Source: Octopus bimaculoides
Taxonomy: Eukaryota
DNA: 36,193 nucleotides
Direction of reading: 5' to 3'
Assembly (NCBI RefSeq): GCF_001194135.2
Contig: NC_068983.1
Span: 137,556,822-137,593,014 of the forward strand
The notes under the pieces are model-generated. The model did not search any database, had not been told where the DNA came from, and saw nothing but the letters and a program-made list of their open reading frames with translations. A program made the translations under genes and the position numbers. This document shows, piece by piece, positions 3,401 through 36,193 of the stretch. How positions within the stretch are numbered: position 1 is the first letter of the stretch; the number at the start of each line of letters is the position of its first letter.

Positions 3401-3717
3401 ACTGCGAGTCAGCATATACGACGTGAAATCGCAAGTAACGTGGCAAATTTATAATCGTGTTCGAAGGGTCCTAATCCCTTACATTGCCTTTATAAAGAGC
3501 AATATTGTGCAAAGTGAAGACGATACACTAATATTTCAGATGGAATCTTGATATAAATACAAGTTTTCTGTAGACATAATTAGGAAAGAATTATTGGTAT
3601 GATTCGTTGTTTGTAACATTGAAAAGATATTGCACAAATTTTTTTTTTAGATATCTAGAAAATGTGTGTCAATGTTCTCTGATAATAGGAAATTTTTTTT
3701 TCTAGTGTTATGAAATT

Positions 3718-6700
3718 ATGCGTCCCAAACGATCGTCACTGAGCAGTCTCACCAAAGAAGCTAGGAGGGCAAGAGAAAAACGGAAAAGGGAAACCACAGA
3801 AGAAAGGCAATTAAGATTAGAAAATCACAGGCAAAGACAATTGGCTCGTCAGCAGACAGAAACAGCAGAAGAAAGGCAGGCAAGATTAGAAGCTAAGAAA
3901 CAGAGGACAAGAGCTTATCGTGCAGCTCTCAAGGTAGGTGTCAGGTATACATTCTTAAGCATCACACACCTATAGGAGAAATATAACAAAGGTCAGCTTA
4001 CAGAATTTATTTGCAAGGTCATTGATATTAAAATTTATTTCAGAGAGCAAGGATGTATGTAGAATAAATGTATTAAGAAGCTTTGTGATAAGAAGTTTCT
4101 TGTGATGTCAACTTTTAGTATTGCAGCCTCTCCACAATTTTCGTTAAGAATGAGCTCAACAAAATACTTTGCAACCTTCAGTCATACTTTGCAACCTTCC
4201 TTGAATCTCCATGTCAGGTATAGGAGCTGTGCAATTGATAAACATCGGTGGGCAAGCCAAGTAACTTACCATGCTCTGTACTTCATTATCTGGTATTATC
4301 AGCAACACAGAAATACGCACCTGCAATACAATATCATGTACACTATACATTGTTGAGGGATCACTATCCATATAAATTGAGTATAATTTTGGAATCAATA
4401 TACGTGATCAAAATACAAGTTTAATGAAGCTACTGTTAAATCAATGGTAGATTCAATCAGGAATTACAATTTTGAAAAATTTTCTGAAGAAAATCTACCA
4501 GAGAACGTCTGTGTGAATTGTAGCAGCAGTTACTATACATTTGATGTTGAAGACAAATTATAACAATCTACCATCATGTGAGATTTCAGAATAGGATACG
4601 TATAACATGTAGCTTCATTTTCATTTCAGTTTCGGAATTCTATTGGGATTCTCTGTTCAGATTGATTTTGAATGCTACATATTGCTATATACTTATGTGA
4701 CTGACAGATTCCATTTTGTATCTTTTTATTTCTTTCTTTGATTATGCCTCACTTCCTCAACACTCAGATGAAAATGATGCAGCAAAAAAAGAACGAAATA
4801 CAGCACCTTGGGGAGCAACACTTGAAGAAGCAACACCAGAATCAAATGTTAAAAAATCAACAATCACATGACAGATGGTATGTGGTGACTAAAATGGTAT
4901 TTTGACAATGTTATTGTGTTACTATTTTTCTTACATATTTCTTCTGAATTAATTGCAAATTTTCATTTTAGGCAAATGGACAGTGCTTTATCATCTCCAA
5001 AGACTTCAAAATGTGTACATCTAACTACTAAAATGCCAGTCCAGCAAGATTCAAGTTTAGCACAAGCATCGCAAAATATTACAAAGCCAGCCCAGGTGTT
5101 GGCTTCACCATTTCAAATAACTCCATCCAAATCAAATCTGGTGAAAAATCCAAATCAAACAACCGTATCTAAATCAATAATTAGAAAAAAAGATTTACCG
5201 AAACAAAAATTGCTAGTTACTAGTCATCAACGTAATGTCATGTCTAACCTAGCATCATTGTGGAGAAGTAGAAAATTTTGTGATGCCTGTATTACCAATG
5301 GCTCATCTACTGTAATGGTAAGTATACAGTTGTAAACTTTTTCATATTTATAAACTGTTTCTATTGTCATCATCATGATAACTAAAAAATCTTGCTTGTA
5401 AGTCTAAAAATTTATGCATAATTTCTAATGTGCTTAATATCAAGATATTCTCCCTCTATATTTCTCAAAGGTAGGTGTAGCCTTTAGTTTTAAGTATTAT
5501 TATTATCAGAAAATTCTACGATTCCGTCATTGAAAATAACTTTTTCTGAAACATTTGCTTATTAATATAGAATAGAACATTTTACAGAAAAAGAAAATGG
5601 AGTTGATTTAATTAAGGTATTAATGAAATAACTCTCTGAGATAAGTGGCTTGAGACTTTTGGGAGTGAATAGGTTTTGTAGAAGATGGAGAAAGATACAC
5701 TTACATTTTTCTACTTTATAAACATGTTTCTTAAATGTCTATCATTGTATTGTTGGCAAGCTATAAATATACTGTTATTATTTACTATATTTCAGGTCCA
5801 TAAAATAGTCTTGTCTGCTGTGTCTCCAAAATTATTATTATTAATTAGTACACACATCTCAACTCAGTTTTATGAAGTAAAATTTCCTGAAGTAAGCACA
5901 GAAACTTTAATGGCTTTTGTTGAATACATGTATACTGGACTATTAGATCTTGATCTTAATATTTTACAACAGCTAAAAGTCATTGCAAAACAATTAGACA
6001 TGAAAGACTTACAAAATATATGTGATGTACATCTTTTACGTGGAGCACGTCAGCAACTTTCTTCAACAGTGACTGCGTTTGATGATCCCAGGCAGATGCC
6101 ATCTGATGTTTCAGCTGTTCCGACAGAGGATATTAAACAGGAGATTTCTCAAAATGAATCAGCAGAACTTAAAGAAGATGAGGTTAGCATCTTTGAGCAA
6201 GAGGTTGAGGCTGCATCTTCGGACACTAAGGATAGCAGCTCTTCAGTTAGTTCTCTTATTCTTCCTACTGTAAAAATAGAGCCTGTAGGACCTGATGACG
6301 ACAAATATGGTCAAATGAATAAAAGGGCTTCAACATCTTGTTCAGTTTCAGATAGTTCTCAGGCACTAAACACTCCTTTGAATTCTATAGCTGTGTCCAC
6401 TACAGATTTTAGCTTACCGTTTTCAGATACCACAAACAGCAAAGCAACTGCAAATAAGATACGTGGAACATCACCTAAATTAAAATCTAACGAAGTTGAA
6501 AGTTCTCCAGTTTCTGACTCATCTCCTTTGTCATATCGTGAAGAAAAACTGTGTTCTCAATCTAGACTCATAAGAGAAGACCCTTCTAAACCACTAAATC
6601 GAACAATAACAACTCAGACAATTGACAACAATGAGATTTGTGGTAGCAATGAAGGTGTCTATCCTGTAGGACTTTTTACAGCAGGAGGGGACAGATTACC

Positions 6701-6767
6701 ATTATCATCAACAGAAGTTACCAATGTCAAAATTACAGGTTTATATAAAACAGATGGTCTTACTTGA
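3718..6767 (+). CDS. STPR-like repeat + BTB/POZ protein, copy 1; join(3718..3933,4768..4877,4972..5317,5796..6767), 547 aa
   Basis: Splice sites AAG|gtaggt 3934, ctcag|ATG 4768, TG|gtatgt 4878, tttag|G 4972, ATG|gtaagt 5318, ttcag|GTC 5796. Phases 0/2/0 join in frame (1644 nt). BTB motif H..VM..L..LW...FCDA..VHKIVLSA.SP..EYMYTG.L.L..A.QL.M..L..IC. Two 23-aa repeats at 3790-3927. AATAAA at 6834. The gene model is well supported; the STPR label rests on recalled similarity. Confidence 0.85.
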
Positions 6768-6833
6768 TATCAGAAATAGTTAATTTTCAGTCTACACACG
6801 CATACACACTGATAAATTGAGCTTTAATTTTGT

Positions 6834-6839
6834 AATAAA
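6834..6839 (+). terminator. Candidate polyadenylation signal AATAAA (paralogous sites at 16329-16334 and 27531-27536)
   Basis: Conserved about 60-70 nt after the stop codon in all three complete terminal exons. Confidence 0.55.
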
Positions 6840-7100
6840 TAATTTTTGAAATACTAGCCTTGTTTTATTTTCTAATGAAAAATACAGTAGAGTTTTCTAT
6901 CTTGTAAAAAATTGTTGATAAATTTCAGTATTGTCTACATAAACTTGTTTTTTGTTGACTATTGCTGCTAGATGTAACCTGTTGCTATCCTCATTTATTA
7001 CCTTTGTACTACTAGGAGTTGGGTGATTGAACAATAGCAGTGGCGGTAGCAGTGCTGCTCCCTTGAAGTCACCAAAGATGTGATCTAAGCATTGTAGAAT

Positions 7101-10696: not shown

Positions 10697-11878
10697 TATG
10701 TCAGACAACAGGAGGCACAGATCAATTGGTGGAGGCAGAGGACCAGAAAATGAAGATCTAGAGATTGAACTCTTACAGTGGATTGTTGTTTAGCGTGCAA
10801 ACAATGTAATTGTAAATTATCGCCATTTACGGGAATATGCTTTTGAATTGGTAAAAAGGTTTGGAATTGGAATGAACAGCTTTAGATGTTCTGATAAATG
10901 GATTTTCAATTTCATGAAACAGAATAATCTGACTGTGAGAAAGATTACACATGTTGGTCAAGCAGACAATAAAAACACTTGGAGAAAAGGCACAAATCAC
11001 CAGTGACTATCTAGATAGTATTCCAATGTTAACAACAGATAAGGATGCTAACCATATTTATAATATGGATGAAACACCTGTATATGTTGACATGTTGAGT
11101 TCAACAACCATAGACTTTGTTGGCAATAAAAATGTAGATGCTAGCCCCTGTGGTGCTACCAAAGCTCGTTTTACTACTGTGTTGTTTGTTAATGCTGCAG
11201 GAAAGGTGTTGAAAACGATGATTACCCTTAAAGGATTGAAAAACGTGCCTAAAATCAACGTCGTAAAGAATATTTACTTAACAGTCTCCAACAGAGGATC
11301 AATCACATATGAACTCATGCAGCTGTGGGCTGACAAAGTGTTTGGGCAGAGAACAGCACAACTATCCCATGCTCAAAATTCAGTGCTATTCATGGACGAA
11401 TGCTCAGTGCATGAGAAAACAGAGCTGCTAGAAGTGTTCAAACGTAGGAATACAATTCTCAAACTTATACCTCCTAAAACAACATCTTACTTGCAGCCGT
11501 TAGATGTATCAATTATTGGTCCATTCAAGAAAGCCCTTCGTGCAGAATGGGATAATTAGTTTTTCAAATGACAAAAAGGAGTATACAAATAAAGAATATT
11601 GCAAAAGACCCTAACAAGAGATAGTGAACTTTGTGGCTCAAGCTGTTGCCACTTTAAATAAAGAAACTATAAAGCATGCTTTTGAATGTTGTGGAATTGC
11701 TCCTCGTGGACAGACTGTAGAACATAGCCTCTTAAACTCATGCTTACAGGATGTTTTGTCTGGCCTTGAGGTAAATGCGCCAGATGCACAAAATGATAAA
11801 ATTGAAGATGAGATACAAGTGAAATTAGCACATGTGAATTATGACCAAGTAACAAATGAAGAAATTTGTGATATTTAA
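10697..11878 (+). mobile_element. pogo/Tigger-like DDE transposase pseudogene (CENP-B-type HTH + DDE_1)
   Basis: LEIELLQWI..FRCSDKWIFNFMKQNNLTVRKIT (HTH), a frameshift, then IYNMDETPVY..RFTTVL..VLFMDECSVH..IPPKTTSYLQPLDVSIIGPFKKALR..AFECCGI. Internal stops are present. TIRs not confidently located. Confidence 0.9.
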
Positions 11879-12710: not shown

Positions 12711-12996
12711 GGCAAGAATTCGGCCCCGATCACTTTTAAGAACTTCTTTTTTTCTAAATATGTGGAAAAATACGGACATTATGATTTGGACAAAAATTTT
12801 AAAACATTTCTGTAGTTATGGTTAGGGGGTTAGGGCCAGTTTTTTGGGGAANNNNNNNNNNNNNNNNNNNNNNNNNNNNNNNNNNNNNNNNNNNNNNNNN
12901 NNNNNNNNNNNNNNNNNNNNNNNNNNNNNNNNNNNNNNNNNNNNNTTTTTAAATAAACAAATTTGAGAGAAAATGGGTTGGGGTCGGAGTCTTTCC
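12711..12996. mobile_element. MITE with ~17-bp imperfect TIRs and an 8-bp TSD (Merlin- or hAT-like)
   Basis: TIRs ggcaagaattcggcccc and ggggtcggagtctttcc (13/17 match to the reverse complement). Flanks agatattg and aggtattg. Absent at the homologous site in copies 1 and 4. Contains a 94-N gap. Confidence 0.6.
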
Positions 12997-13086: not shown

Positions 13087-16000
13087 ATGCGTACCAAACG
13101 ATCATCACTGGGCCGTCTCACCATACATGGAAAGAAGACAAGAGAAAGACGGAAAAGGGAAACCACAGAAGAAAGGCAATTAAGATTACGAAATCATAGG
13201 GAAAGACAATCTGCTGCTCGACAGGCAGAAACAGCAGAAGAAAGGCAGGCAAGATTAGAAACTCAGAAACAGAGGGCAAGAACTCGTCGTGCAGCTCTCA
13301 AGGTAGGTGTCAGGTATACATTCTTAAGCGTCACACACCTATAGGAGAAATATAACAAAGATCAGCTTACAGAATTTATTTGCAAGGTCATTGATATTGA
13401 AATTTATTTCAGAGAGCAAGGATGTATGTAGAATAAATGTATTAAGAAGGTTCATGATATGAAGTTTCTTATGATGTCAACTTTTAGTATTGCAGCCTCT
13501 CCACAAATTTCATTAAAAATGAGCTCAATAAAATCATGAATTAAGGCTCAGTCATACTTTGCAACCTTCCTTGAATCTCCATGTCAGGTTTAGGAGCTGT
13601 GCAATTGATAAACATTAGTTGGCAAGCCAAGTACCTTACCATGCTCCATACTTCATTACCTGGTATTATCAGCAACACAGAAATACGCACCTGTAATAAA
13701 TTGAGTAGAACTTCAGAATCAATGTATGTGATAAAAATACTACTTTAAAGAAGCTACTGTTAAATCAATTGTAAATTCAATCAGGAATTACAACGTTGAA
13801 AAATTTTCTGCAGAAAATCTACCAGAGAACGTCTGTGTGAATTGTGGCAGCAGTCACTATATATTTGATGTTGAAGACAAATTACAACAGTTTACCACCA
13901 TGTCAGATTTCAGAATAGAATAAGTATAACATGCAGCTGCATTCTCATTTCAGTTTTGGAATTCTGTAGAGATTCTCTGTTCAGGTTGATTTTGAATGCT
14001 TTTGGGGATTTACCATATACTCATGTGGCTGACAGATTCCATTTTTTCTTAGTGGATTCAATGTGGGAATTCAAATATTTGTTAGTCTTACAAACAAGAA
14101 TTTTTAGTTATCATTGACATTTGCATTAGCCTAAATTATTCATTCATCACAGTCCAAATTATTTCCATTGAACTGAAATCTTTATTCTTTTATCTTTTTA
14201 TTTCTTTCTTTGATTATGCCCCACTTCCTCAANNNNNNNNNNNNNNNNNNNNNNNNNNNNNNNNNNNNNNNNNNNNNNNNNNNNNNNNNNNNNNNNNNNN
14301 NNNNNNNNNNNNNNNNNNNNNNNNNNNNNNNNNNNNNNNNNNNNNNNNNNNNNNNNNNNNNNNNNNNNNNNNNNNNNNNNNNNNNNNNNNNNNNNNNNNN
14401 NNNNNNNNNNNNNNNNNNNNNNNNNNNNNNNNNNNNNNNNNNNNNNNNNNNNNNNNNNNNNNNNNNNNNNNNNNNNNNNNNNNNNNNNNNNNNNNNNNNN
14501 NNNNNNNNNNNNNNNNNNNNNNNNNNNNNNNNNNNNNNNNNNNNNNNNNNNNNNNNNNNNNNNNNNNNNNNNNNNNNNNNNNNNNNNNNNNNNNNNNNNN
14601 NNNNNNNNNNNNNNNNNNNNNNNNNNNNNNNNNNNNNNNNNNNNNNNNNNNNNNNNNNNNNNNNNNNNNNNNNNNNNNNNNNNNNNNNNNNNNNNNNNNN
14701 NNNNNNNNNNNNNNNNNNNNNNNNNNNNNNNNNNNNNNNNNNNNNATTATGTGATGCCAGTATTAGCAATGGCTCATCTACTGTGATGGTAAGTATACAG
14801 TTGTAAACGTTTTCACATCTATAGACTGTTCCTAATGTCATCATCATAACTAAAAAATCTTGCTTGTAAGTCTAAAAATTTATGCATAATTTCTAATGTG
14901 CTTAATATCAAGATATTCTTTCTTCTACTTCCCTCTATATTTCTCAAAGGTAGGTGTAGCCTTTAGTTTTAAGTATTATTATTATCAGAAAATTCTACGA
15001 TTCCGTCATTGAAAATAACTTTTTCTGAAACATTTGCTTATTAATATAGAAGAGAATATTTTACAGAAAAAGAAAATGGAGTTGATTTAATTAGGGTATT
15101 AATGAAATAACTCTTTGAGATAAGTGAAGTTTAAATCAACTTTCAGTGGCTTAAGACTTTTGGGAGTGAATAGGTTTTGTAGAAGATGGAGAAAGATAAA
15201 CTTACATTTTTCTACTTTATAAACATATTTCTTAAATGTCTATCATTGTATTGTTGGCAAGCTATAAATATACTGTTATTATTTACTATATTTCAGGTCC
15301 ATAAAATAGTCTTGTCTGCTGCATCTCCAAAATTGTTATCACTAATTAGTACACACATCTCTTCTCAGTTTTATGAAGTAAAATTTCCTGAAGTAAGCAC
15401 AGAAGCTTTAATGGCTTTTGTTGAATACATGTATACTGGACTATTAGATCTTGATCTTAATATTTTACAACAGCTAAAAGTCATTGCAAAACAATTAGAC
15501 ATGAAAGACTTACAAAATATATGTGATGTTCATCTTTTACGTGGAGCACGTCAGCAACTTGCTTCAACAGTGACTGTGTTTGATGATCCCAGGCAGATGC
15601 CATCTGATGTTTCAGCTGTTCCGACAGAGGATATTAAACAGGAGATTTCTCAAAATGAATCAGCAGAACTTAAAGAAGATGTGGTTAGCATCTTTGAGCA
15701 AGAGGTTGAGGCTGCATCTTCGGACACTAAGGATAGCAGCTCTTCAGTTAGTTCTCTTATTCTTCCTACTGTAAAAATAGAGCCTGTAGGACCTGATGAC
15801 GACAAATATGGTCAAATGAATAAAAGGGCTTCAACATCTTGTTCAGTTTCAGATAGTTCTCAGGCACTAAACACTCCTTTGAATTCTATAGCTGTGTCCA
15901 CTACAGATTTTAGCTTACCGTTTTCAGATACCACAAACAGCAAAGCAACAGCAAATAAGATACGTGGAACATCACCTAAATTAAAATCTAACGTATTTGA

Positions 16001-16268
16001 AAGTTCTCCAGTTTCTGACTCATCTCCTGTGTCATATCGTGAAGAAAAACTGTGTTCTCAATCTAGACTCATAAGAGAAGACCCTTCTAAACCACAAAAT
16101 CGAACTATAACAACTCAATCAATTGACAACAATGTGACTTATGGTAACACTGAAGGTGTCTATCCTGTAGGACTTTTTACAGCAGCAGGGGACAGATTAC
16201 CATTATCATCAACACAAGTTACCAATGTCAAAAATATAGGTTTATATAAAACAGATGGTCTTACTTGA
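13087..16268 (+). CDS. STPR-like repeat + BTB/POZ protein, copy 2; exon A 13087..13302, exon B and most of exon C in gap 14233-14746, exon C end 14747..14788, exon D 15297..16268
   Basis: Same splice signals as copy 1. All visible exons are open. The 514-N gap matches the 515 nt separating the homologous flanks in copy 1, so the missing exons probably lie in the gap. Confidence 0.75.
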
Positions 16269-16624: not shown

Positions 16625-17017
16625 GGCTGATGCCAGTGCTGCCTGACTGGCACCTGTGCTGGTGGTACATAATAAGCACCATTCAAGTGTGAGTCAATGC
16701 CAATTCCACATGCTCCTTGTGCCGGTGGCTCATAAAAACACCATCCGAATGTGGTTGATGCCAGTGCTTCCCGATTGGCTCCTGTGCCGGTGACACATAA
16801 AAAGTACCATTTGAACATGGTCGATGCTAGTGTTGCCTGACTGGTTACTGTGCTGGTGGCACATTAAAAGCAACTTACAATCTTGGACTGGTTAGTGTTA
16901 GGAAGGGCATTCAGATCAGATTGGAGCCTGGTGCAGCTTACTGGCTTGCCAGTCCTCAGTCAAACTGTCCAACCCATGCCAGCATAGAAAATGGATATTA
17001 ATCAATGATGATGATGA
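16625..17017 (+). mobile_element. RTE-LINE 3' UTR fragment with about four ~63-bp units and a (TGA)n tail
   Basis: Same unit and terminus as 19420-19905. Confidence 0.75.
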
Positions 17018-17779: not shown

Positions 17780-18012
17780 GACTGGCTCCCGTGCTGGTAG
17801 CATGTAAAAAGCACCATTTGAGCGTTGTTGATGCCAGTACTGCACGATTGGTCCTACTACACTCTCGGAGTGGTTGGCGTTAGGAAGGGCATCCAGCTGT
17901 AGAAATCTTGCCAGATCAGACTGGAGCCTGGTGCAGCCTTCTGGCTTACCAGTCCCCAGTCAAACTGTCCAACCCATGCCAGCATGGAAAGCAAACGATA
18001 AACGATGATGAT
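17780..18012 (+). mobile_element. RTE-LINE 3' end fragment
   Basis: ctctcggagtggttggcgttaggaagggcatccagctgtagaaa...ccaacccatgccagcatggaaag...gatgatgat. Confidence 0.75.
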
Positions 18013-18479
18013 AATTTTGATTAAACCAAAACAGGAATGGTTGCGTTTAGTCCAAACACTTATTTTCAAATATACTTAGAACTACATTATACAGAGTTAT
18101 ATTCCTTTTAACATGGTAGCATTTCTAATAGGTCGAATAACCATGAAGAGGTTTTTCATTGATTAGCGCATGATTTTACTTTCAGTTAATATTACTTTTG
18201 TTAAAGTAGCCAGCATCTTCCAATAAGATGCAAACATCTTTATATTTAAAAGAAGAAAATATTCCATAATGAAACTAAATCGATGCCATGTGAGCTGTAC
18301 AATGCCATGTGTTTAATGTAAGTATAGAAGAGCAGCTGGAATCGAATTATTGGAAACACTGGATTGAAAGCAATGTTCACCGGAAAGATCACTATTTATT
18401 TGTGTGGGATACCATGTGACAACCCACGTGCTCAACGATTTCCAACGAAACCATCAAAATATCGAACGCATGTGCTTTG

Positions 18480-18875
18480 ATGCGCGCACATGAGGAGACA
18501 ATAAACTCAAAACTTATATCTGAAATGTTGACAGATGTGTCAAAAATATTCGGAGATGTTTTCGTTCAGACCGCTTTTGACTCATTTGATTCATTCTTGG
18601 AGCTATTGCACCAGTTCATGAATAGAACTGGATACATATACCGTATTAAATCATCGTGTAATGCTAATGACCACAACAAGTACTGAGACAAGACTCGATC
18701 TAAGACTCTCCGATACATCTCCATGACATTTGTGTGTACTCAATATGGAGAACTAAAAGATAATTCAAATACAAAACAACTTAAGATGCACTGCAAGCCA
18801 GTCAGATGTAAGTCATTCCTCTCACTATCCAGTGCTAAAGGATAACTGAATCCAACTTAGAACACAATCACAAAC
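18480..18875 (+). pseudogene. Decayed FAR1/ZSWIM3-N-like (WRKY-GCM1 fold) DNA-binding domain, probably a MULE transposase relic
   Basis: FDSFDSFLELLHQFMNRTGYIYRIKSS..*..LRYISMTFVCTQYG..PVRCKSFLSL, then in a shifted frame ITESNLEHNH. The C..C..HNH signature carries one stop and one frameshift. Confidence 0.6.
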
Positions 18876-18959: not shown

Positions 18960-19905
18960 GTTGTGATTGAAGTAGAGGACATGTGTAGGCTTGAAAGAAA
19001 TGAAGCTCGTATGATCTGCTGGATGGGTAATGTAGGTGTAAACGCTCTGAAAGAAAAGTTGGGCATAAGAAGCATCAGATGTGGTGTGCAAGAGAGGCGA
19101 CTGTGCTGTTATGGCCATGTGTTATGTATGAATGAAGACAGCTGTGTGAGGAAGTGCCATTCCCTAACTGTAGAAGGAACTTATGGAAGAGATAGAGCCA
19201 AGAAAACATAGGATGAGGTGGTGAAGCATGACCTTTGAACATTGGGCCTCACAGTGGTGATGACAGGAGACTGGGACCTTTGGAAATATGCTGTGATTGA
19301 GAAGACCCAGCAACTAAAGTGAGATTGAAGCCATGCATGTCCGGCCCTGTTAAGAATACCCCTGATGCATCAAGCGATATGATAGGCTTGAGAAGACCTG
19401 CTGAGTCAAGTAAAGCCAATATCATAGCTGGGACCAGTGCTCTCTGACTGGCTCCCATGTCAGTGGCACGTAAATAGCACCATCCGAACTTGGTCGATGT
19501 CAAGTCTGTCTGACTGGCTCCCATGCCGGTGGCATGTAGAAAGCACCAACTGAACATGGCCAATGCCAGTACCCCCAGACTGGCTCCTGTACTGGTGGCA
19601 GGTAAAAAGCATTGACTGATCGTGGCCAATGCCAGTAGCCCTGATTGGGTCTTATGCCGGTAGCATGTAAAAACACCATCCAAATGTAATTGATGCCAGG
19701 CCCGCGTGACTGGCTTCTGTGCTGGTGGTACATAAAAAGTACCCACTACACTCTTAGAGTGGTTGGTGTTAGGAAGGGCATCCAGCTGTAGAAACATTGC
19801 CAGACCAGATTGGAGTCTAGTGCAGCCACTGGCTCTGCAGACCTCAATCAAATCGTCCAACCCATGCCAGCATAGAAAATGGATGTTAAATGATGATGAT
19901 GATAT
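18960..19905 (+). mobile_element. 5'-truncated RTE-clade LINE: ORF C-terminus, 3' UTR with about five ~65-bp tandem units, (TGA)n tail
   Basis: RLERNEARMICWM..LGIRSIRCGVQERRLCCYGHVLCMNEDSCVRKC..VEGTYGRDRAKKT*DEVVKHDL resembles the RTE RLRWYGHV..GRPRKTW tail. Units at ~19434, 19501, 19567, 19633 and 19696. Confidence 0.85.
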
Positions 19906-23678: not shown

Positions 23679-26600
23679 ATGGAAGAGAGAATAAGTCAAC
23701 AAAGAGCGGCAGCAAGAGAGAGACAGAGAAGACGACGACAGCGGTTATCATCCGAAGAGAGGCAAGCAGTCCGTGAACGTATTCGAGAACGTATGCAAAA
23801 AATGAGGAGTAATATGAACGAAGAGGAGAGAGAACTTTATCTTCAGAATAGGAGAAACAGGGATCGAGAAAGAAGAAGTAATATGGATCAAGATGAGAGA
23901 GAACTTTATCTTCAGAATAAAAGAAACAAAGATCAGGAGAGAAGAAATAACATGAATCCTGAGGAGAGAGAAACTTATCTACAGAATATGAGAAATAGAG
24001 TTCAAAAGCGAAGAAATGCCATAAATGAAGATCAACAAAATGAAGTTATGCATCCCAAACTATCGTCACTGGGCCGTCTCACCAAACATGCTAGGAAGGT
24101 AAGAGAAAGACAGAAAAGGGAAACCACGGAAGAAAAACAATTAAGATTACAAAACCAGAGGCAAAGACAATTTGCTAGTCAGCAGGCAGAAACAGCGGAA
24201 CAAAGGCAGGCAAGATTGGAAGCTCAGAAACAGAGGACAAATACTTATCGTACAAGTCTCAAGGTAAATATCAGGTATACATTTTTAAGCATCACACACC
24301 TATAGAGGAAATATAACAAAGATCTGCTTATAGAATTTATTTGTGAGGTCATTGATATTGCAATTAATTTCAGAGACCAAGGATATATGTAGGATGAATG
24401 TATTAAGAAGCTTCATAACATGAGGTTTCTTGTGATGCAAACTTTTAGTACTGCAGCCTCTCCAAAATTTTCATTAAAAATGAGCTCAATAAAATTATGA
24501 ATTAAAGCTCAGTCATACTTTGTATGCTTCCTTGAATCTCCATGTCAGGGTTAGTAGCTGTGCAATTGATAAACATCAGTGGGCAAGCCAAGTAACTTAG
24601 TGTGCTCAGTACTTCATTATCTGGTATTATCGGCAACACAGAAATACGCACATGTAATAAAGTATCATGTATGCTATACAGTGTTGAGGGATCACTATCA
24701 ATTATAAATTGAGTAGAACTTTGGAATCAATGTATGTGATAAAAATCCAAATTTAATGAAGCTGCTGTCATGTCAATTGTAAATTCAATCAGGAATTACA
24801 ATGTTGAAAAATTTTCTGAAGAGAATCTACAAGAGAAAGTCTGTGTGAATTGTGGCAGCAGTTACTATATATTTGATGTTGAAGACAAATTACAACAGTC
24901 TACCATCATGTCAGATTTCAAAATAGGATAAGTATAACATCCAGCTCCATTCTCGTTTCAGTTTTGGAATTCTGTAGAGATTCTCTGTTGAGGTTGATTT
25001 TGAATGCTTTTTCTTTAGTGAAAGTTTCAGTGTGGAAATTAAGCATTATGTGTTAGCCTTACAAACAAGAATTTTTAGTTATCATTGACATTTTCATTAA
25101 AATAACTTATCAATTCGTCACAGTCTAAATTATTTCCATTGAACTGAAATCTTTATTTGTATCTTTTTATTTCTTTCTTTGATCATGCCTCACTTCCTCA
25201 ACACTCAGATGAAAATGACACAGAAAAAAAAGAATGAAACACAGCACCTTGGGGAGCAACACCTGCAGAATCAAAAGTTTAAAAATCAACAATCACATGA
25301 CAGATGGTATGTGATGACTAAAATGGTATTTTGACAATGTTATTGAGTTACTATTCTTCTTATATATTTCTTCTGAATTAATTGCAAATTGTCATTTTAG
25401 GCAAATGGACAGTGCTTTATCATTTCCAAAGACTTCAAAATGTGTACATCTAACTACTAAAATGCCAGTCCAGCAAGATTCAAGTTTAGCCCAAGCATCG
25501 CAAAATATTACAAAGCCAGCTCAGGTGTTGACTTCACCATTTCAAATAACTCCATCCAAATCAAAGCTGATGAAAAATCCAAATCAAACAACTGTATCTA
25601 AATCAATAATTAGAGAAAAAGATTTACCGAAACAAAAATTGCTAGTTACTAGCCATCAACATTATGTTATGTCTAACCTAGCATCCATGTGGAGAAATAG
25701 GAAATTATGTGATGCCAGTATTAGCAATGGCTCATCTACTGTGATGGTAAGTATACAGTTGTAAACGTTTTCACATCTATAGACTGTTCCTAATGTCATC
25801 ATCATGATAACTACAAAATCTTGCTTGTAAGTCTAAAAAATTATGCTTAATTTCTAATGTGCTTAATATCAAGCTATTCTTTCTTCTACACCCCTCTATA
25901 TTTCTTAAAGATAGGTCTAGTTGACGTGTATGTTCTTACTGGTGCAATTCTTAGATAAATCTGTTGTTTTATAATTAATTGGTCATAAAATCTTTTATNN
26001 NNNNNNNNNNNNNNNNNNNNNNNNNNNNNNNNNNNNNNNNNNNNNNNNNNNNNNNNNNNNNNNNNNNNNNNNNNNNNNNNNNNNNNNNNNNNNNNNNNNN
26101 NNNNNNNNNNNNNNNNNNNNNNNNNNNNNNNNNNNNNNNNNNNNNNNNNNNNNNNNNNNNNNNNNNNNNTATAGATAAATTTTTTATTAAGTTTTAAGTT
26201 TTATTATTATCAGAAAATTTTATGATTCAGTCATTGAAATACACTAGAATATTTTACAGAAAAAGATAATGGAGTTTATTTAATTAAAGTATTAATGAAA
26301 TAACTCTCTGAGATAAATGAAGTTTAAACTAACTTTCAGTGGCTTAAGACTTGGTTAGTCAATAGCTTTTGTAAAAGTTGGAAAAACATAAACTTACATT
26401 TTTCTACTTTATGAACATGTTTCTTAAATATCTATCATTGTATTGTTGGCAAGCTATAAACGTACTGTTTATTATTTACTATATTTCAGGTCCATAAAAT
26501 AGTCTTGTCTGCTGTGTCTCCAAAACTGTTCTCAGTGTTTAGTACACACATCTCTTCTCAGGTGTTTGAAGTAAAATTTCCTGAAGTAGTTAGTACAGAA

Positions 26601-27464
26601 GCTTTAATGGTTTTTGCTGAATACATGTATACTGGACTATTAGATCTTGATCTTAATATTTTACAACAGCTAAAAGTCATTGCAAAACAATTAGACACGA
26701 AAGACTTAGAAAATCTGTGTGATGCTCATCTTCTAAGTGGAGCAAGTCAGCAACTTGCTTCGACAGTTACTGCATTTGATGATCCCAGGCAGATGCCATC
26801 TGATGTTTCAGCTGTTCCTACAGAGGATATTAAACAAGAGATTTCTCAAAACGAATTAGCACAACTTAAAGAAGGTACAGTTAGAACCTTTAAGCGAGAG
26901 TTTGATGCTGCATCTCTGGACTCTAAGAGTGGCAACTCTCCAGTTGGTTCTGTTATTCTTCCCAGTGTAAAAATGGAGCCTGTAGGACCTGATGATGACA
27001 AATATGGTCAAATGAATGAAAGAGCTTACACATCTTGTTCAGTTTCAAATAGTTCTGAGACTCTAAAAACTACTTTGAATTCTATAGTTGTGTCCACTAC
27101 AGATTTTAGCTTACCGTTTTCAGATACCACAAACAGCAAAGCAACAGCAAACAAGATACATGGAACATCACCTAAATTAAAATCTAATGTATTTGAACGT
27201 TCTCCAGTTTCTGACTCATCTCCTGTGTCATATCGTGAAGAAAAACTGTGTTCTCAATCTAGACTCATAAGAGAAGACCCTTCTAAACCACTAAATCGAA
27301 CAATAACAACTCAGACAATTGACAACAATGAGATTTGTGGTAGCAATGAAGATGTCTATCCTGTAGGACTTTTTACAGCAGGAGGGGACAGATTATCATT
27401 ATCATCAACACAAGTTACCAATGTCAAAAATACAGGTTTATATAAAACAGATGGTCTTACTTGA
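23679..27464 (+). CDS. STPR-like repeat + BTB/POZ protein, copy 3 with an expanded repeat exon; join(23679..24263,25209..25306,25401..25746,26490..27464), 667 aa
   Basis: Phases 0/2/0 join in frame (2004 nt). Donors gtaaat, gtatgt, gtaagt. Four extra 23-aa repeats at 23745-24020 plus the two shared repeats from 24120. BTB motif intact. Confidence 0.85.
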
Positions 27465-31025: not shown

Positions 31026-31689
31026 ACTCACTTCTACACACCTCATACCTTGATGGACCACCCAGATACTTTATAACAACTATTTCATCTCCTCCCAGCT
31101 TCCCCCAGTCATTCTGACCCTCTCTTCAATATGTAACTATGTAGCTCCTCTACAGTAAGAAACCTGCTCTGCTCCTTTCTATGATACTTTAACCCTTCAT
31201 CTTACATAAAACCATCCTCCCCTCAGAGTTTGTAGTCTTGCACACTGCATGGGAACCTCACTAGTGTTGGTGACATGAAAATAGCTCCCAGTATATTCTG
31301 TATTGTTTGGCATTAGGAAGGATATCCAGGAGTCACTGGAGCACAATGCAATCCTTAGACTCATTGTATACAGTCAAACTGTCCAAATCATTCCAGTATG
31401 AACAAGGTGTTAAATGATGATATATATGTGGGTCAATGGCTTGGTGACTGGGATAAACTTAATACCAACTTTATAAACCACTCTCCTGAGTCTCATTATA
31501 ATATTCCACAGTATTGTAGACTATACATCCAGTGGCTGAAAAAATAGAGACCCTAATCAAGATATTCCTAACCAATCCTATGATGACATATCGTGGATAG
31601 CAGGGTTGTCTATAAATGTAATGGAGGCTCTTATTAAATTTGTGGTATGGAAAATACAATCTCAAGTTCAAACTTAATGTCTAGAATGT

Positions 31690-31998
31690 TAGCCTCTGTA
31701 CTGCATCGCTTGAAATAGATAGAAAGATTGTAGTTTCTGCAAAAAAAGTATGGAGACGCTTTCTAAGCCTCTCCAGCTGTGACTGGGAACATCCAGATGG
31801 GGTTCAGAGATCTCTGTTGAGCCCATCCACTCGAATGAGAAAGCTCCCTCTCAGATGATAGAGGAGGTACAGACCGACAAGGTTGGTCATCTGGGTTCTC
31901 ATTCCTAAGGTATTTTTCAATGTTCAGGTCACTGCCTAGAATCGAACTTGGAATCTTGAGGTTAGTAGTCCACGCTCTTAACCACTACGCTATATGCC
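31690..31998 (-). mobile_element. tRNA-derived SINE (head ~31925-31998)
   Basis: The minus strand reads ggcatatagcgtagtggttaagagc...aagttcgattctaggc with A and B boxes. The anticodon stem pairs poorly. The 3' extent is approximate. Confidence 0.6.
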
Positions 31999-34038
31999 TG
32001 TGATGAATGCTGGAGGGTATATCAGCTGAAACGTTGTGTTGACAGTAAACAAGATGAGGAGAAATATCCATCAAATGTAAATAATGATGTGTTTAATGTT
32101 CAGCTTGAACTTCTGCAGGACAATGTTGTCAGGAAATGTATGGTTAGGAAGGGAATTCCAAAGAGAAAGAACTGAGTGAAATATCTAGGGAAGAGTATGT
32201 CAGTAGCTAGTTCAGAGAAGCAGAGGTTTTCATGGTTGCAATAAAAGTGGCAGAGAGAAGAAATAGCATGTTTGTGAGGTAATTGTTGATACTTGTTGGT
32301 AAGTGAATTATCACTAATCATATGAATGACTTTTTAAATGTGTATGTGTGTGTGTGGCAGCACTATTTCAAAGCATGAGCAGTTCACCTATGTTGGGTTT
32401 ACTTAAGCTTTGTAAGTGGTCAGCTAAAGTATTTGCGGACCCTTAAGAGGAATCCTTGTTTTTGCAGTGCAGTTTTGGCTATGATATAATAAGGTTTGGC
32501 ATAAGAGATAAATAGTGATTGTGAGGTCTGGCATTTATAGTTACTTTCAGTGCTTTGGTTGTGTTGTTTATGGCTGAAGGTTTGTGTTACAATTAAATTT
32601 CCTTGACATATGTGTCTTTGGGATATTGAAAGATAGCTCGAATGTCAAGTTGCTATTAGAAGATGCTTACATCTATGTCTGGCATGAAGTATTGTTACAA
32701 GCACCTTCCCCAATTTTTTTTACAAAGCTCACATTGAGCAGGTGTAAGTTCAAAAATATACCAGTGCTAGCCAAATCATGTTTCTTTGTAGATACACTGT
32801 ATCCAAGCACAACATTATTCAAAGTGTCCTTCTCCTTTTATGACTTTTGGAATACTTTTGCCTACAAGGCTATTCGACCAGGGATCACCTGAGACTAATA
32901 GCACCGTCAGGTTTTGATATTGTCAAATTACAATAGGTATAGTGGTCTGCATCTAGAAATTTAGTTAATCATATCGTCACTACTTTTCCAAAGATTACAT
33001 CATGAAATTGCACTCAATTTTCATGGTTTCTTTCACTTGAATATAAATATTTGCTTTAAAATAAATAATTTCAAACCTACTAACATTAAATTATATTTTA
33101 CTGAAATTTGAAGCTTTGCTCAGTGGCAATATCATTGTCATTGAGATTTTTCCGACGTTAGTTGAAAAAGGTAATTCATCCATAATTAAGAGAGTTATCG
33201 AACCTGCAGGCTCAGGAAACGAACATTTCACCTACTGTTGGCCCTTCTCGGGTTAGTTTAATTTATTTCCACCGCTTTGCTATTATGAAACACTCGAAAA
33301 TCGTTTAATGTGGTTCTATTATTTTCACATCTTAAATGTTATAATTTTTTTGTTTCCTCCTGATTACCCATATTGTTTTTCCTTTTGCGTTCAACAGTTA
33401 ATCATTCCTGCCGTGCTTTAGTGGATAATACATGGGTAAATATTTGTACCATGTCACTATCTTCTACATATATGTGATGCTATATCCTAATTATATATAA
33501 TGCATAGAAAATTCAGAAAAGCTCGGCATTACGCAAAATACGTCTTAAAAAGTATTAGGAATGAACAACTCTGTAATCGAATTGTTTCTTATTACAAACT
33601 TTCTGGGAAGAAAATACAAAGCGTTAGGGACTTTATAAAAATTAGAATTAATAAGAATAATTCATGAACGTGCTTCAATTAAACACGAAAATATTTAATT
33701 TATTCTAAGACTTCAAAATGAGTAAACTACCCAATCGTTCCAATCTGTTGATTATTTACAAAATAAATGAGTAGCGATCACCAGATTAGCTTAAAAGGCA
33801 GATACTCATTGCTTTCGTCGAATTCAGAATTTTTTAATTCCTCAACTAAAAGATACATGCAAAATGAAATATCGTAAAAATATCCAATTGTCTTTGTGGT
33901 AAATAAAAAAATGATATTTCTACATTCGATATAAAACTACAAATTTGGAATCGAACTAATTACTAAAATATGTGTCCATCTTGGCAATGTTTAAAATCAC
34001 ATTTTACTACTTTTCTCACGTTGACTCCAGCAAAGAAG

Positions 34039-34070
<32 letters not shown>

Positions 34071-34498
34071 NNNNNNNNNNNNNNNNNNNNNNNNNNNNNN
34101 NNNNNNNNNNNNNNNNNNNNNNNNNNNNNNNNNNNNNNNNNNNNNNNNNNNNNNNNNNNNNNNNNNNNNNNNNNNNNNNNNNNNNNNNNNNNNNNNNNNN
34201 NNNNNNNNNNNNNNNNNNNNNNNNNNNNNNNNNNNNNNNNNNNNNNNNNNNNTCACTTACACCCCGTTTATAAAGAGCAATATTGTGCAAAGTGAAGACC
34301 GTACACTAAGATTTCAGTTGTAATCTTCATATAAATACTAGTTTTCTGTAGACATAATCAGGAAAGAATTATTGGTATAATTTGTGGTTTGTAACATTAT
34401 GTTTAAAAGATTGTACAAATTTTATTTTCAGATATCTAGAAAATGTGTGTCAATGTTCTCTGATAATAGGACGTCTTTTTTTCTAGTGTTATGAAGTT

Positions 34499-36193
34499 AT
34501 GCCTCCCAAAATATCATCACTGGGCCGTCTCACCAGGAATGCTATGAGGGTAAAGGAAATACGGAAAAACGAAACCACAGAAGAAAGGCAATTAAGATTA
34601 GAAAATCATAGGGAAAAACAGTTTGCTAGACGGCGGACAGAAACAGCAGAACAAAGGCAGGCAAGATTAGAAGCTCGGAAACAGAGCACATATAATTATC
34701 GTACAAATCGCAAGGTAGATATCAGGTATACATTCTTAACCATCACACACCTATAGGAGAAATATAACAAAGTTGTGATATCAACTTTTAGTATTGCAGC
34801 CTCTCCACAATTTTCATTAAAAATGAGCTCAACAAAATTATGAATTAAAGCTCAGTCATACTTTGTATGCTTCCTTGAATCTCCATGTCAGGGTTTGTAG
34901 CTGTGCAATTGATAAACATCAGTGGGCAAGCCAAGTAACTTAGTGTGCTCAGTACTTCATTATCTGGTATTATCTGCAACACAGAAATACGCACATGTAA
35001 TAAAGTATCATGTATGCTATACAGTGTTGAGGGATCACTATCAATTATAAATTGAGTAGAACTTTGGAATCAATGTATGTGATAAAAATCCAAATTTAAT
35101 GAAGCTGCTGTCATGTCAATTGTAAATTCAATCAGGAATTACAATGTTGAAAAATTTTCTGAAGAGAATCTACCAGAGAAAGTCTGTGTGAATTGTGGCA
35201 GCAGNNNNNNNNNNNNNNNNNNNNNNNNNNNNNNNNNNNNNNNNNNNNNNNNNNNNNNNNNNNNNNNNNNNNNNNNNNNNNNNNNNNNNNNNNNNNNNNN
35301 NNNNNNNNNNNNNNNNNNNNNNNNNNNNNNNNNNNNNNNNNNNNNNNNNNNNNNNNNNNNNNNNNNNNNNNNNNNNNNNNNNNNNNNNNNNNNNNNNNNN
35401 NNNNNNNNNNNNNNNNNNNNNNNNNNNNNNNNNNATGTTGAAGACAAATTACAACAGTCTACCATCATGTCAGATTTCAGAATAGGATAAGTATAACATC
35501 CAGCTCCATTCTCGTTTCAGTTTTGGAATTCTGTAGAGATTCTCTGTTCAGGATGATTTTGAATGCTATATATTGCTATATACTTATGTGACTGACAGAC
35601 TCCATTTTTTCTTAGTGGATTCAATGTGGGAATTCAAATATTTGTTAGTCTTACAAACAAGAATTTTTAGTTATCATTGACATTTGCATTAGCCTAAATT
35701 ATTCATTCATCACAGTCCAAATTATTTTCATTGAATTGAAATCTTTATTCTTTTATCTTTTTATTTCTTTCTTTGATCATGCCTCACTTCCTCAACACTC
35801 AGATGAAAATGATACAGAAAAAAAAGAACGAAATACAGCAACACTTAAAGAAGCAACACCAGAATCAAATGTTAAAAAATCAACAATCACATGACAGATG
35901 GTATGTGGTGACTAAAATGGTATTTTGACAATACTATTGAGTTACTATTCTTCTCTTCTGTATATTTCTTCTGAATTAATTGCAAATTTTCATTTTAGGC
36001 AAATGGACAGTGCTTTATCATCTCCAAAGACTTCAAAATGTGTACATCTAACTACTAAAATGCCAGTCCAGCAAGATTCAAGTTTAGCACAAGCATCGCA
36101 AAATATTACAAAGCCAGCTCAGGTGTTGGCATCACCATTTCAAATAACTCCATCCAAATCAAATCTGGTGAAAAATCCAAATCAAACAACCGT
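34499..36193 (+). CDS. STPR-like repeat + BTB/POZ protein, copy 4, 3'-partial; exons 34499..34714, 35803..35900, 35999..>36193
   Basis: Acceptor tctag at 34486. AAG|gtagat, ctcag|ATG, TG|gtatgt, tttag|G. All exons open and homologous to copies 1-3. The BTB part lies beyond the window. Confidence 0.8.

Follow-up and report, generated by a model that had tools for sequence, protein, structure and literature searches.

Which genes does this stretch of Octopus bimaculoides chromosome C3 encode, and do they form a rapidly expanding regulator family? The stretch, hereafter the window, spans C3:137,556,822-137,593,014 (36,193 nt) and contains four neighbouring paralogues that join a fast-diverging STPR-like repeat, putatively DNA-binding, to a constant BTB domain. 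The four homologous same-strand copies proposed by a sequence-only reading are present, with start codons at 3718, 13087, 24048 and 34499, and each paralogue is a four-exon gene on the + strand, arranged head-to-tail. The proposed start-codon spacings (9369, 10961 and 10451 bp) were reproduced, and are approximate because of assembly gaps. We built the gene model on P0001 (547 aa), a 100% match to copy 1, which gives the following features in window coordinates:

3718..3933, + strand: copy 1 exon A, 72 codons, basic arm and two 23-residue STPR-like repeats, 100% to P0001 residues 1-72
4768..4877, + strand: copy 1 exon B, Q/K-rich helical linker, AG/GT sites present
4972..5317, + strand: copy 1 exon C, disordered linker and N-terminal part of the BTB domain (Pfam BTB, E 4.7e-14)
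5796..6767, + strand: copy 1 exon D, remaining BTB, disordered C-terminal region with two conserved ψKxE motifs, conserved tail, stop codon
13087..13302, + strand: copy 2 exon A, 100% to P0012 residues 1-72
14233..14788, + strand: copy 2 gap (14233-14745), then the last 14 codons of exon C (14746-14788) with GT donor
15297..16268, + strand: copy 2 exon D, open frame, 93% amino-acid identity to copy 1
23679..24263, + strand: copy 3 extended exon A, Helitron-derived block (23679-24047) and canonical exon A (24048-24263), matched by P0005 (LOC106877738 X2)
25209..25306, + strand: copy 3 exon B, from the gene model
25401..25746, + strand: copy 3 exon C, from the gene model
26490..27464, + strand: copy 3 exon D, from the gene model
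34499..34714, + strand: copy 4 exon A, matched by P0043
35803..35900, + strand: copy 4 exon B, from the gene model
35999..36193, + strand: copy 4 exon C, first 195 nt, the remainder lying inside a 1509-N gap just beyond the window

Assembly gaps are frequent (eight in the window, 28 across the 173 kb examined), and large ones flank the window on both sides; none breaks a readable frame. Those at 12852-12945 and 34071-34252 are non-coding, upstream of exon A of copies 2 and 4, and that at 25999-26169 lies in the copy 3 intron between exons C and D. The gap at 14233-14745 (513 N vs 502 nt in copy 3, with flanks collinear with copy 3 positions 25201 and 25704) presumably conceals exon B of copy 2 together with all of exon C except its last 14 codons, which are in frame with their GT donor. 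A further gap, at 35205-35434, falls in intron 1 of copy 4, where the paralogues have only ~15 nt, so that its stated length is probably too large. In copy 4, the 1509-N gap immediately after the window conceals what remains of exon C along with ~230 exon D codons; the tail of exon D resumes at C3:137594524-137594799. Because gaps conceal exons of copies 2 and 4, openness is seen in these two copies for readable exons only. The readable exons of the four copies contain no stop codons, every visible AG/GT splice site is conserved, and copy 1 has a conserved in-frame splice acceptor at 3706, 12 nt 5' of the ATG.

The gaps also bear on whether the copies could be haplotigs, or one or two loci misassembled in a short-read scaffold rich in gaps. 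Another point in favour of such an artefact is the small unplaced contig C32271, which matches part of copy 1 exon D at 100% identity. Against this, the copies differ at 6-19% of nucleotides and each has its own exon A; O. vulgaris has counterparts of copies 1, 3 and 4 in conserved order; and gap-free loci carry tandem cassettes both in O. vulgaris (17.4 kb; two complete copies, 11.6 kb apart) and in O. sinensis (46.8 kb; three cassettes). The ordered array shared by these gap-free assemblies largely refutes the haplotig reading, to which we attach almost no weight. We conclude that the array arose by whole-gene tandem duplication, introns and flanks included, which predates the divergence of O. 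bimaculoides from O. vulgaris and O. sinensis. Self-BLASTN of the window gives collinear units of ~3.4 kb (83-98% identity) that include introns and near flanks, and the co-duplication of introns and flanks anticipated by the sequence-only reading is borne out at 81-100% nucleotide identity. Its suggestion that the array continues past the window also proved correct, on both sides. The close family has five members, four of them inside the window; the fifth (g5), upstream, consists of a THAP domain, an STPR remnant and BTB; its exon-B acceptor is lost (AG to AA) and its repeat 1 is incomplete.

The encoded proteins share one order: basic arm, two STPR-like repeats (exon A), helical linker, long-form BTB and a cephalopod-only disordered tail. 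In copy 1 the repeats occupy residues 25-47 and 48-70, and E1, T/S2, R6, R9 and L10 (Thr at position 2 in copy 1) are invariant in both repeats of all copies, in a strict 23-residue register. The published STPR definition fits the E1, T/S2, R9 pattern (PMC4856987). AF2 predicts a 21-residue helix (27-47; pLDDT 70-87) after an E25-T26 linker, and a single helix spanning repeat 2 and exon B (residues 50-114); most of the protein is predicted to be disordered, 335 of its 547 residues having pLDDT <50. For the repeats, Pfam offers no STPR model, and a PDB search with the repeat profile returned only two matches, one of them FMBP-1 (5d23) at a non-significant E of 3.1. The repeats vary mainly in their second half (0.89 bits at positions 11-23 vs 0.24 bits at positions 1-10).

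The BTB domain of copy 1 matches Pfam PF00651 (E 4.7e-14), and its PDB sequence matches are NS1-BP, ZBTB17/BCL6, KLHL3 and CP190. The AF2 model of this segment (pLDDT 68-81) aligns by Foldseek over nearly the whole BTB domains of ZBTB8A, BCL6 and PLZF, with TM 0.78-0.80. Since the top sequence and fold matches also include KLHL proteins, KEAP1 and NS1-BP, a role as Cul3 substrate adaptor stays among the readings: the proteins would then be adaptors or scaffolds that do not bind DNA, with exon A serving only as a basic, coiled-coil or nuclear-localisation segment. Such a role is in keeping with proteins among the best PDB matches by sequence and fold (NS1-BP, KLHL3, gigaxonin, KEAP1, SPOP), with the merging of repeat 2 with exon B into one long helix and with the lack of significant STPR similarity. 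However, Pfam finds no BACK, Kelch or MATH domain; the matches to ZBTB8A, BCL6 and PLZF are just as good; the geometry of a two-residue linker plus 21-residue helix fits STPR, as does the E1/T2/R6/R9/L10 signature; and sister genes or isoforms place bona fide THAP, FLYWCH, CENP-B/Tc5 HTH and FAR1 domains in the position of exon A. We therefore judge the Cul3 reading quite improbable and favour a putative DNA-binding exon A; the STPR-BTB system that had been supposed for a cephalopod is genuine, as a head-to-tail set of STPR-like and BTB paralogues.

The alternative first exons belong to a wider cluster of at least ten BTB cassettes on the same strand over ~155 kb, as judged by exon-D-like matches at ten places. 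Its 5' exons code for transposon-derived DNA-binding domains, namely THAP, FLYWCH, pogo/CENP-B-like HTH, FAR1-like and Helitron N-terminal repeats, and less securely a Tc1-like HTH. Isoforms of the neighbouring gene LOC106877732 share one constant part, to which THAP, FLYWCH, CENP-B/Tc5 HTH or other N-termini are joined. The close paralogues of the window are the youngest part of this cluster. Three remnants within the window are related to such exons or to transposons:

4408..4757, + strand: relic of an ancestral alternative 5' exon in copy 1 intron 1, decayed, homologous to the zinc-finger N-terminal exon of LOC106877732 isoform X15
10939..11878, + strand: pogo-like DDE_1 transposase remnant, spacer 1 only (Pfam DDE_1, E 1.5e-16)
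18420..18842, + strand: FAR1/ZSWIM3_N-like DNA-binding pseudo-exon in spacer 2, two in-frame stops (BLASTP vs Argonauta P0039 N-terminus, E 2e-14)

The first has equivalents at 13735-13890, 24743-25005 and 35086-35564; by tblastn these relics show 48-54% identity, with frame breaks and stops. An intact paralogue of the FAR1/ZSWIM3_N-like pseudo-exon lies at C3:137600105-137600491, and the pogo-like element has at least 87 genomic copies. The proposal that the spacers carry different transposable elements thus stands for this element, but the collinear share is ~30% between spacers 2 and 3; between spacer 1 and the others it is ~12%. Helitron fragments are present in orthologous spacers.

A Helitron also contributed to copy 3. 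Its block at 23679-24047 comprises about four 23-residue 'MNxEER' repeats (Tandem Repeats Finder: 69-nt period, 3.2 copies at 23810-24031) with at least 74 dispersed relatives, mostly stop-ridden, one of them ~2 kb 5' of a PIF1 helicase ORF. The block is also found in the O. vulgaris orthologue of copy 3. The N-terminal repeat block of a Helitron was thus captured by copy 3 and is now read in frame with exon A. Two canonical repeats are present in most copies; copy 3 adds about four of Helitron type to its two, and one O. vulgaris copy has four canonical repeats. Of the variable array envisaged earlier, variation in repeat number is therefore real, but most differences are substitutions in the C-terminal half of two repeats and not changes in a long modular array.

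To follow how the family evolves, exon A and the constant region were considered separately. In the exon A tree, copy 1 and its orthologues from O. sinensis and O. vulgaris form one group (support 96/98), and monophyly of the O. bimaculoides sequences is rejected (p-AU 0.00076). The constant-region tree gives (g5,(c1,c2)), c1 and c2 being copies 1 and 2, with support of 98-100, and grouping by orthology is rejected (p-AU 0.0002 and 0.0007). Identity between copies is patchy, from 81% to 100%. Evolution is mosaic: the constant part is homogenised patchwise by gene conversion, and exon A stays paralogue-specific and conserved between species. Between paralogues, ω is about 1 for exon A (0.63-2.2; dN 0.16-0.28), 0.04-0.6 for exons B and C and 0.69-0.78 for exon D. 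Among paralogues, divergence is much faster in the N-terminal repeat exon than in the BTB part, with pN higher in exon A in every pair (P 1.7e-3 to 3.5e-11), but an exon A ω above 1 does not reach significance on the N:S ratio (P 0.07-0.38). Between orthologues exon A is under purifying selection (dN 0.043, ω 0.38). For exon A, sustained positive selection explains the data no better than relaxed constraint or a short early burst.

The ω values of exons A and D between paralogues would also suit a decaying array in which some or all copies are unprocessed pseudogenes from recent duplication, as would the losses in g5 and the pseudo-exons in introns and spacers. This is very unlikely, given that the readable exons of all four copies are open with conserved splice sites, that orthologue ω is 0.38-0.59 vs introns at 85.6% identity, and that the exon A lineages have stayed intact since before the species split.

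Is the family, then, engaged in an arms race in the style of KRAB-ZNF or ZAD-ZNF genes, with each paralogue repressing a transposon family and turning over quickly? As in those families, the genes are clustered in tandem and the putative DNA-binding exon outpaces the effector part in divergence; the DNA-binding exons of the cluster are transposon-derived, including the block captured by copy 3, and Helitron fragments lie in the orthologous spacers. On the other hand, there are five close members and not hundreds, positional orthologues are retained in three Octopus species (O. bimaculoides, O. vulgaris and O. sinensis), exon A is constrained between them, and a genome search found no dispersed relatives of canonical exon A at E ≤ 1e-3. 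The large, fast-turnover expansion proposed earlier is not supported by these data, the KRAB-ZNF analogy holds only in outline, and we consider an arms race unlikely.

Since the cluster of at least ten cassettes includes THAP, FLYWCH, HTH, FAR1 and Helitron-derived 5' exons, mod(mdg4)/lola and host-transposase fusions are closer analogies. Like the octopus cluster, mod(mdg4)/lola combines a constant BTB with many alternative DNA-binding exons, several transposon-derived (FLYWCH), in one same-strand locus. In octopus, however, the variable domain is N-terminal and supplied by alternative 5' exons, whereas the fly adds it C-terminally, by trans-splicing; the octopus constant cassette is itself duplicated at least ten times, and its BTB is nearer ZBTB/KLHL types than the TTK type (CG6765, E 0.0019), which is reported to be arthropod-specific (PMC11426971). 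In host-transposase fusion, a host gene captures a transposase DNA-binding domain by splicing (Cosby et al. 2021, as cited in PMC10027918); the octopus genes similarly join transposon-derived DNA-binding exons to a host effector domain, with copy 3 as a direct example of capture. Octopus THAP-BTB and CENPB-BTB genes were noted by Mukherjee & Moroz 2023, and BTB/POZ is reported in most Octopus THAP and CENPB transcription factors (PMC10027918). PMC10027918 does not cover the STPR-type members, the common constant module, the tandem array or mosaic evolution, and treats BTB as a transposon component; the present data do not support that treatment. No STPR-BTB fusion was found in the literature searched. 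Vertebrate ZBTB (BTB-zinc finger) repressors, such as BCL6 and PLZF, likewise pair a long-form BTB fold with a separate presumed DNA-binding part, but the octopus order is reversed, with the putative DNA-binding part N-terminal to BTB, and zinc fingers are lacking.

With the STPR domains of Bombyx FMBP-1 and human ZNF821, the octopus proteins share 23-residue repeats with conserved Glu1, Thr/Ser2, Arg6, Arg9 and Leu10, a two-residue linker and 21-residue helix per repeat, and a basic composition. They differ in having two repeats, not four (literature range three to seven), and positions 11-23 are dissimilar to those of FMBP-1. In the solved FMBP-1 domain, four repeats lie along the major groove of AT-rich 4-bp repeats, with the base-facing residues in repeat half 11-23. 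We propose that (i) the BTB domain dimerises each protein, alone or with paralogues; (ii) the dimer would place 2 + 2 STPR helices on DNA, equalling the repeat number of the solved domain; (iii) the paralogues, which differ mainly in the half that is base-facing in FMBP-1, would recognise different sites; and (iv) the BTB domain and SUMO-motif tail may recruit co-repressor or chromatin factors. We thus think it likely that the window encodes an Octopus-lineage STPR-like and BTB family of putative DNA-binding regulators, the youngest part of a cephalopod-only cassette cluster that, by its sequence, builds regulator-like proteins from transposon-derived parts.

The sequence-only reading had proposed four start codons, at 3718, 13087, 24048 and 34499, and closely related sequence does surround each of them. 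Self-BLASTN of the window yields four collinear units of ~3.4 kb, all on one strand and 83-98% identical, which take in the introns and a few hundred bases of flank; the proposal that introns and flanks were duplicated together with the exons is thus borne out. The window corresponds to positions 137,556,822-137,593,014 on the plus strand of chromosome C3 of Octopus bimaculoides. We derived a four-exon model of copy 1 from an identical database protein of 547 aa (P0001), which exposed the small exon B; a direct splice from exon A to exon C was ruled out, as the phases are incompatible.

Exons of copy 1, placed by the match to P0001
3718-3933, plus strand, exon A (basic arm and repeats R1 and R2)
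4768-4877, plus strand, exon B (linker)
4972-5317, plus strand, exon C (with exon D, the BTB domain and disordered tail)
5796-6767, plus strand, exon D

Copies 2-4 have the same exon set, with all visible AG/GT sites kept. Copy 3 corresponds to LOC106877738 and copy 2 to UniProt A0A0L8GDT8, a truncated model; the database names for these genes are 'uncharacterized' or 'Ken-like' only. The window gave no Rfam match. Several assembly gaps touch the copies, and the spacings between copies are approximate for this reason.

Assembly gaps
12852-12945, gap 5' of exon A
34071-34252, gap 5' of exon A
25999-26169, intronic gap
35205-35434, intronic gap
14233-14745, gap of 513 N that stands for 502 nt of copy 3 and covers exon B and most of exon C of copy 2
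directly 3' of the window, gap of 1509 N that covers the rest of exon C and ~230 exon D codons of copy 4

The final 14 codons of exon C of copy 2 and its donor are readable and in frame, and the exon D tail of copy 4 resumes at 137594524-137594799. No gap contradicts the gene model, and the intactness of copies 2 and 4 is putative.

A reading of the copies as haplotigs was ruled out on two grounds: they differ from one another at 6-19% of nucleotides, and ordered arrays are present in gap-free sequence of O. vulgaris and O. sinensis. The gap-free O. vulgaris chromosome carries, in this order, a gene resembling g5 (LOC106877737, a fifth close paralogue upstream of the window), the copy 1 orthologue and the copy 3 orthologue, with a copy 4-like gene 11.6 kb beyond the latter. 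The gap-free O. sinensis locus (L023, CM016861.1:139599522-139646329) spans 46.8 kb and holds three cassettes, as we call the BTB-bearing constant units. Its NCBI model LOC115209898 (P0004) links exons of the first and third cassettes over a whole intervening paralogue, a pattern that may point either to a chimeric annotation or to cross-cassette splicing; as a possible chimera, it was set aside as evidence of such splicing. Two small unplaced O. bimaculoides contigs carry exon D fragments, one 100% identical to copy 1 (C32271:3-248) and one at 83% (C38024:2-130); they may represent residual haplotype sequence or collapsed repeats.

Close STPR-type members (at least 78% identity) came only from O. 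bimaculoides, O. vulgaris and O. sinensis; relatives are also present in Argonauta, as THAP-BTB and FAR1-BTB proteins, and in a cuttlefish. The array does run beyond the window, as had been suspected, with ten same-strand exon D-like places between 137.476 and 137.615 Mb. An expanding family like KRAB-ZNF or ZAD-ZNF genes had also been suggested; a large lineage-specific expansion with rapid gain and loss did not hold, as there are five close paralogues, whose order and orthology the three Octopus species share. Some 2 Mb away, on the minus strand and so opposite to the array (C3:135.37-135.49 Mb), at least five further BTB-like matches form a second group, 31-49% identical to the BTB segment of exon D.

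An STPR repeat measures 23 residues, made up of a two-residue linker and a helix of 21 residues, and Glu1, Thr/Ser2 and Arg9 are its conserved positions (PMC4856987). In the exon A product, a basic arm precedes two units, ETTEERQLRLENHRQRQLARQQT and ETAEERQARLEAKKQRTRAYRAA, each exactly 23 residues long; they occupy residues 25-47 (R1) and 48-70 (R2) in all copies and have the repeat length of FMBP-1 and ZNF821. Glu1, Thr/Ser2 and Arg9, and also Arg6 and Leu10, are invariant in both canonical repeats of copies 1-4 and their orthologues, and the AlphaFold model predicts a 21-residue helix (27-47) directly after E25-T26. STPR proteins contain three to seven repeats, usually four, and bind DNA in the major groove; the four O. 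bimaculoides copies fall short of this with two canonical repeats each, and the O. vulgaris copy 4-like gene has four, by internal duplication. FMBP-1 (5d23) is one of just two PDB matches to the repeat profile, and since this similarity is non-significant (E 3.1) and two repeats stand in place of the usual four, we use the label 'STPR-like'. Pfam, which has no STPR model, gave no meaningful match on exon A or on the N-terminal extension of copy 3. The paralogues differ mostly at repeat positions 11-23 (0.89 bits vs 0.24 bits), the same half of the repeat that holds the base-facing residues 13, 14, 17 and 21 of FMBP-1 (PMC4856987).

The extension of copy 3 adds 123 N-terminal residues made up of 23-residue 'MNxEER' units with a 69-nt period, which depart from the STPR residue signature with Met at position 1, Asn or Asp at 2 and Tyr at 9. 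At least 74 relatives of this block, mostly stop-ridden, are dispersed genome-wide, and one of them (L018) has a PIF1 helicase ORF on the same strand ~2 kb downstream (E 1.4e-40). A phmmer search of the 195-aa repeat region against the PDB matched the Helraiser N-terminus only, at a non-significant domain E of 0.67. Given the dispersed relatives, the PIF1 ORF near one of them and the weak likeness to the Helraiser N-terminus, we conclude that copy 3 acquired, in frame, the 5' end of a Helitron ORF; because the O. vulgaris copy 3 orthologue shares the extension (92% identity), the capture predates the species split. For canonical exon A, a genome-wide search at E ≤ 1e-3 turned up no dispersed relatives, and its sole transposon link is a Helitron-adjacent pseudo-ORF in O. 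vulgaris with 38% identity (E 7e-6, from a 10-kb search). Transposon-derived DNA-binding parts are seen in the copy 3 extension (Helitron) and in g5 (THAP, E 2.8e-5).

Long-form ZBTB proteins carry a BTB domain with an N-terminal β1-α1 extension that makes a swapped dimer interface, and are without BACK or Kelch domains; TTK-type BTB domains (mod(mdg4), lola, GAF) have a TTK motif and a hexamer interface. By profile match and by fold, the domain encoded here belongs to the BTB/POZ family: PF00651 is matched with a Pfam E of 4.7e-14 (52.9 bits vs a cut-off of 20.5), and Foldseek superimposes it on nearly whole BTB domains of ZBTB8A, BCL6, PLZF and NS1-BP with TM 0.78-0.80. For the AlphaFold model, a family alignment of 22 sequences was used; it is confident only at residues 20-110 (helices) and 193-316 (the BTB domain), the remainder being predicted as disordered. 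In this model α1 is present at 193-207 and the β1 strand is absent; the BTB alignments begin at BCL6 residues 4-10. The sole TTK-type structure match, CG6765 (8rc6, E 0.0019), is weaker than those to NS1-BP, ZBTB and KLHL proteins, and TTK-type domains are reported from arthropods only (PMC11426971). A rival reading takes the proteins as Cul3 adaptors; NS1-BP and KLHL proteins are among the structural matches, and Pfam detects no BACK or Kelch domain.

Exon D of all copies contains two ψKxE motifs (the SUMOylation consensus), invariant in eight distant family members, as is the C-terminal tail VYPVGLFTAGGD..LPLSS..LYKTDGLT.

ψKxE motifs in exon D, as residues of P0001
~337-341, DIKQE
383-387, VKIEP

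The post-BTB tail has 11 matches among 1.84 billion representative proteins, and those that are named are all cephalopod, bar one spurious low-complexity match.

Phylogenies differ between exon A and the constant part (the other exons). The exon A tree places copy 1 with its orthologues from O. sinensis and O. vulgaris (support 96/98), and a single clade of O. bimaculoides copies is rejected (p-AU 0.00076); in the constant-region tree, g5, copy 1 and copy 2 form a clade (support 98-100) and orthology groupings are rejected (p-AU 0.0002 and 0.0007). Sliding-window identity is 96-100% between copies 1 and 2 from 5378 to 6573, 99% between copies 3 and 4 in intron 1, and 99% between copies 1 and 4 in exon C. 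The exon A window, at 81-90% in all pairs, is usually the lowest, and is below the flanking intron in most pairs. Our reading of these sequence patterns is that the duplications predate the species split, and that gene conversion then homogenised the constant part, with exon A kept paralogue-specific.

The expectation of faster evolution in the DNA-binding part than in the effector part is upheld between paralogues: dN is 0.16-0.28 in exon A vs 0.00-0.085 outside it, and per-site non-synonymous change is higher in exon A in all pairs (P 1.7e-3 to 3.5e-11), with no difference in synonymous change. The ω values are 0.63-2.2 for exon A, where values above 1 are non-significant, 0.04-0.6 for exons B and C, and ~0.7-0.8 for exon D. 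Between copy 1 and its O. sinensis orthologue, exon A is the most constrained part (dN 0.043, ω 0.38), with ω 0.43 for exon C, dN 0.082 and ω 0.59 for exon D, and introns just 85.6% identical. A transposon arms race, in which the proteins would bind and silence transposons in the manner of KRAB-ZNF or ZAD-ZNF members, is a rival reading of how the family works. The comparisons fit, short of proof, an early divergence of DNA-recognition surfaces followed by conservation.

Immediately upstream of the window, g5 consists of a THAP exon, a shortened exon A and exons B-D. Its exon B acceptor (C3:137547807) reads AA in place of the AG of other copies, its repeat 1 has a four-codon deletion, and the annotated protein uses other junctions. 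Further upstream, the annotated isoforms of LOC106877732 join alternative 5' exons to one constant part; these exons encode THAP, FLYWCH, a CENP-B/Tc5 HTH, a zinc-finger segment or a winged HTH (HTH_29), the last a weak match that falls short of the Pfam cut-off. Upstream of LOC106877732 there also maps an exon of DUF3504-like type, which an O. sinensis isoform contains, and ahead of other cassettes lies a FLYWCH exon, an exon of Helitron-type repeats or an intact FAR1-like exon. In copies 1, 2 and 4, a pyrimidine tract and CTAG acceptor lie 12 nt 5' of the ATG (3706, 13075 and 34487), and the frame is open through the acceptor (CYEIM, CNEVM and CYEVM, respectively). Because g5 joins its THAP exons in frame to exon A through the equivalent acceptor, exon A may double as an internal exon.

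Exon remnants, an intact relative, and repeats
4408-4757, intron 1 of copy 1, decayed N-terminal exon of LOC106877732 isoform X15
13735-13890, intron 1 of copy 2, the same
24743-25005, intron 1 of copy 3, the same
35086-35564, intron 1 of copy 4, the same
18420-18842, plus strand, spacer 2, FAR1/ZSWIM3_N-like DNA-binding pseudo-exon, 59% identity to the N-terminus of Argonauta FAR1-BTB
C3:137600105-137600491, intact FAR1-like paralogue downstream of copy 4, before the next BTB cassette
16629-16872 and 19444-19678; also 2045-2359, 3172-3410 and 17853-18018, tandem and short dispersed repeats

The X15-like sequences contain frame breaks and stops, have lost the zinc-finger-like start, and look like the relic of an ancestral alternative first exon. 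The FAR1-like pseudo-exon was detected by comparison with the Argonauta protein; Pfam on ten spacer ORFs found nothing but DDE_1. Tandem repeats of 66-bp period occur, and the spacers have short dispersed repeats in common; these may be SINE-like or satellite sequence. A rival reading sees a decaying array, to which these remnants would belong; copies 2-4 keep the exon set and all visible splice sites.

On our proposal for the window copies, BTB-mediated dimers would place four STPR helices on DNA, paralogue-specific residues would set site preference, and the BTB domain and tail with its two invariant ψKxE motifs would recruit co-repressor or chromatin partners. The KRAB-ZNF analogy is valid in outline only; nearest in design are mod(mdg4)/lola and host-transposase fusion genes. 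The likeness to mod(mdg4)/lola lies in the annotated LOC106877732 isoforms, with one constant part and many alternative DNA-binding exons, whereas the window copies each own a constant cassette. In Octopus, BTB is reported as the usual companion of THAP and CENPB domains in such factors (PMC10027918).

A broader reading, which we regard as improbable when taken jointly with all its parts, would make the entire region of 155-170 kb the cephalopod equivalent of mod(mdg4)/lola, its polarity reversed. In it, at least 15 DNA-binding 5' exons of transposon origin (THAP, FLYWCH, pogo HTH, Tc1 HTH, FAR1/MULE, DUF3504 and Helitron/STPR-like) would combine with at least ten duplicated BTB cassettes through alternative 5' exons and perhaps cross-cassette splicing. 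Each product would recognise the source transposon family of its DNA-binding domain or, for STPR, AT-rich satellite repeats, and BTB heterodimerisation would provide combinatorial control; gene conversion would keep the BTB cassettes compatible, and selection the DNA-binding exons distinct.

In the literature searched, neither STPR-BTB genes and STPR-type members nor the array and its mosaic evolution are described. C2H2 zinc-finger and protocadherin genes are the well-known expanded families of cephalopod genomes, and the locus adds another kind of regulator family: a cephalopod-restricted BTB module that repeatedly gains transposon DNA-binding exons, arranged as a tandem array and, in a neighbouring gene, as an alternative-first-exon locus. 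The window copies display the process finely, with whole-gene tandem duplication, in-frame Helitron capture (copy 3), change in repeat number, gene conversion restricted to the constant part, and paralogue-specific DNA-binding exons later conserved between species. If the proteins bind DNA, they would represent an independent, non-arthropod instance of the mod(mdg4)/lola design, and a natural variant series for how the poorly studied STPR helices read DNA.
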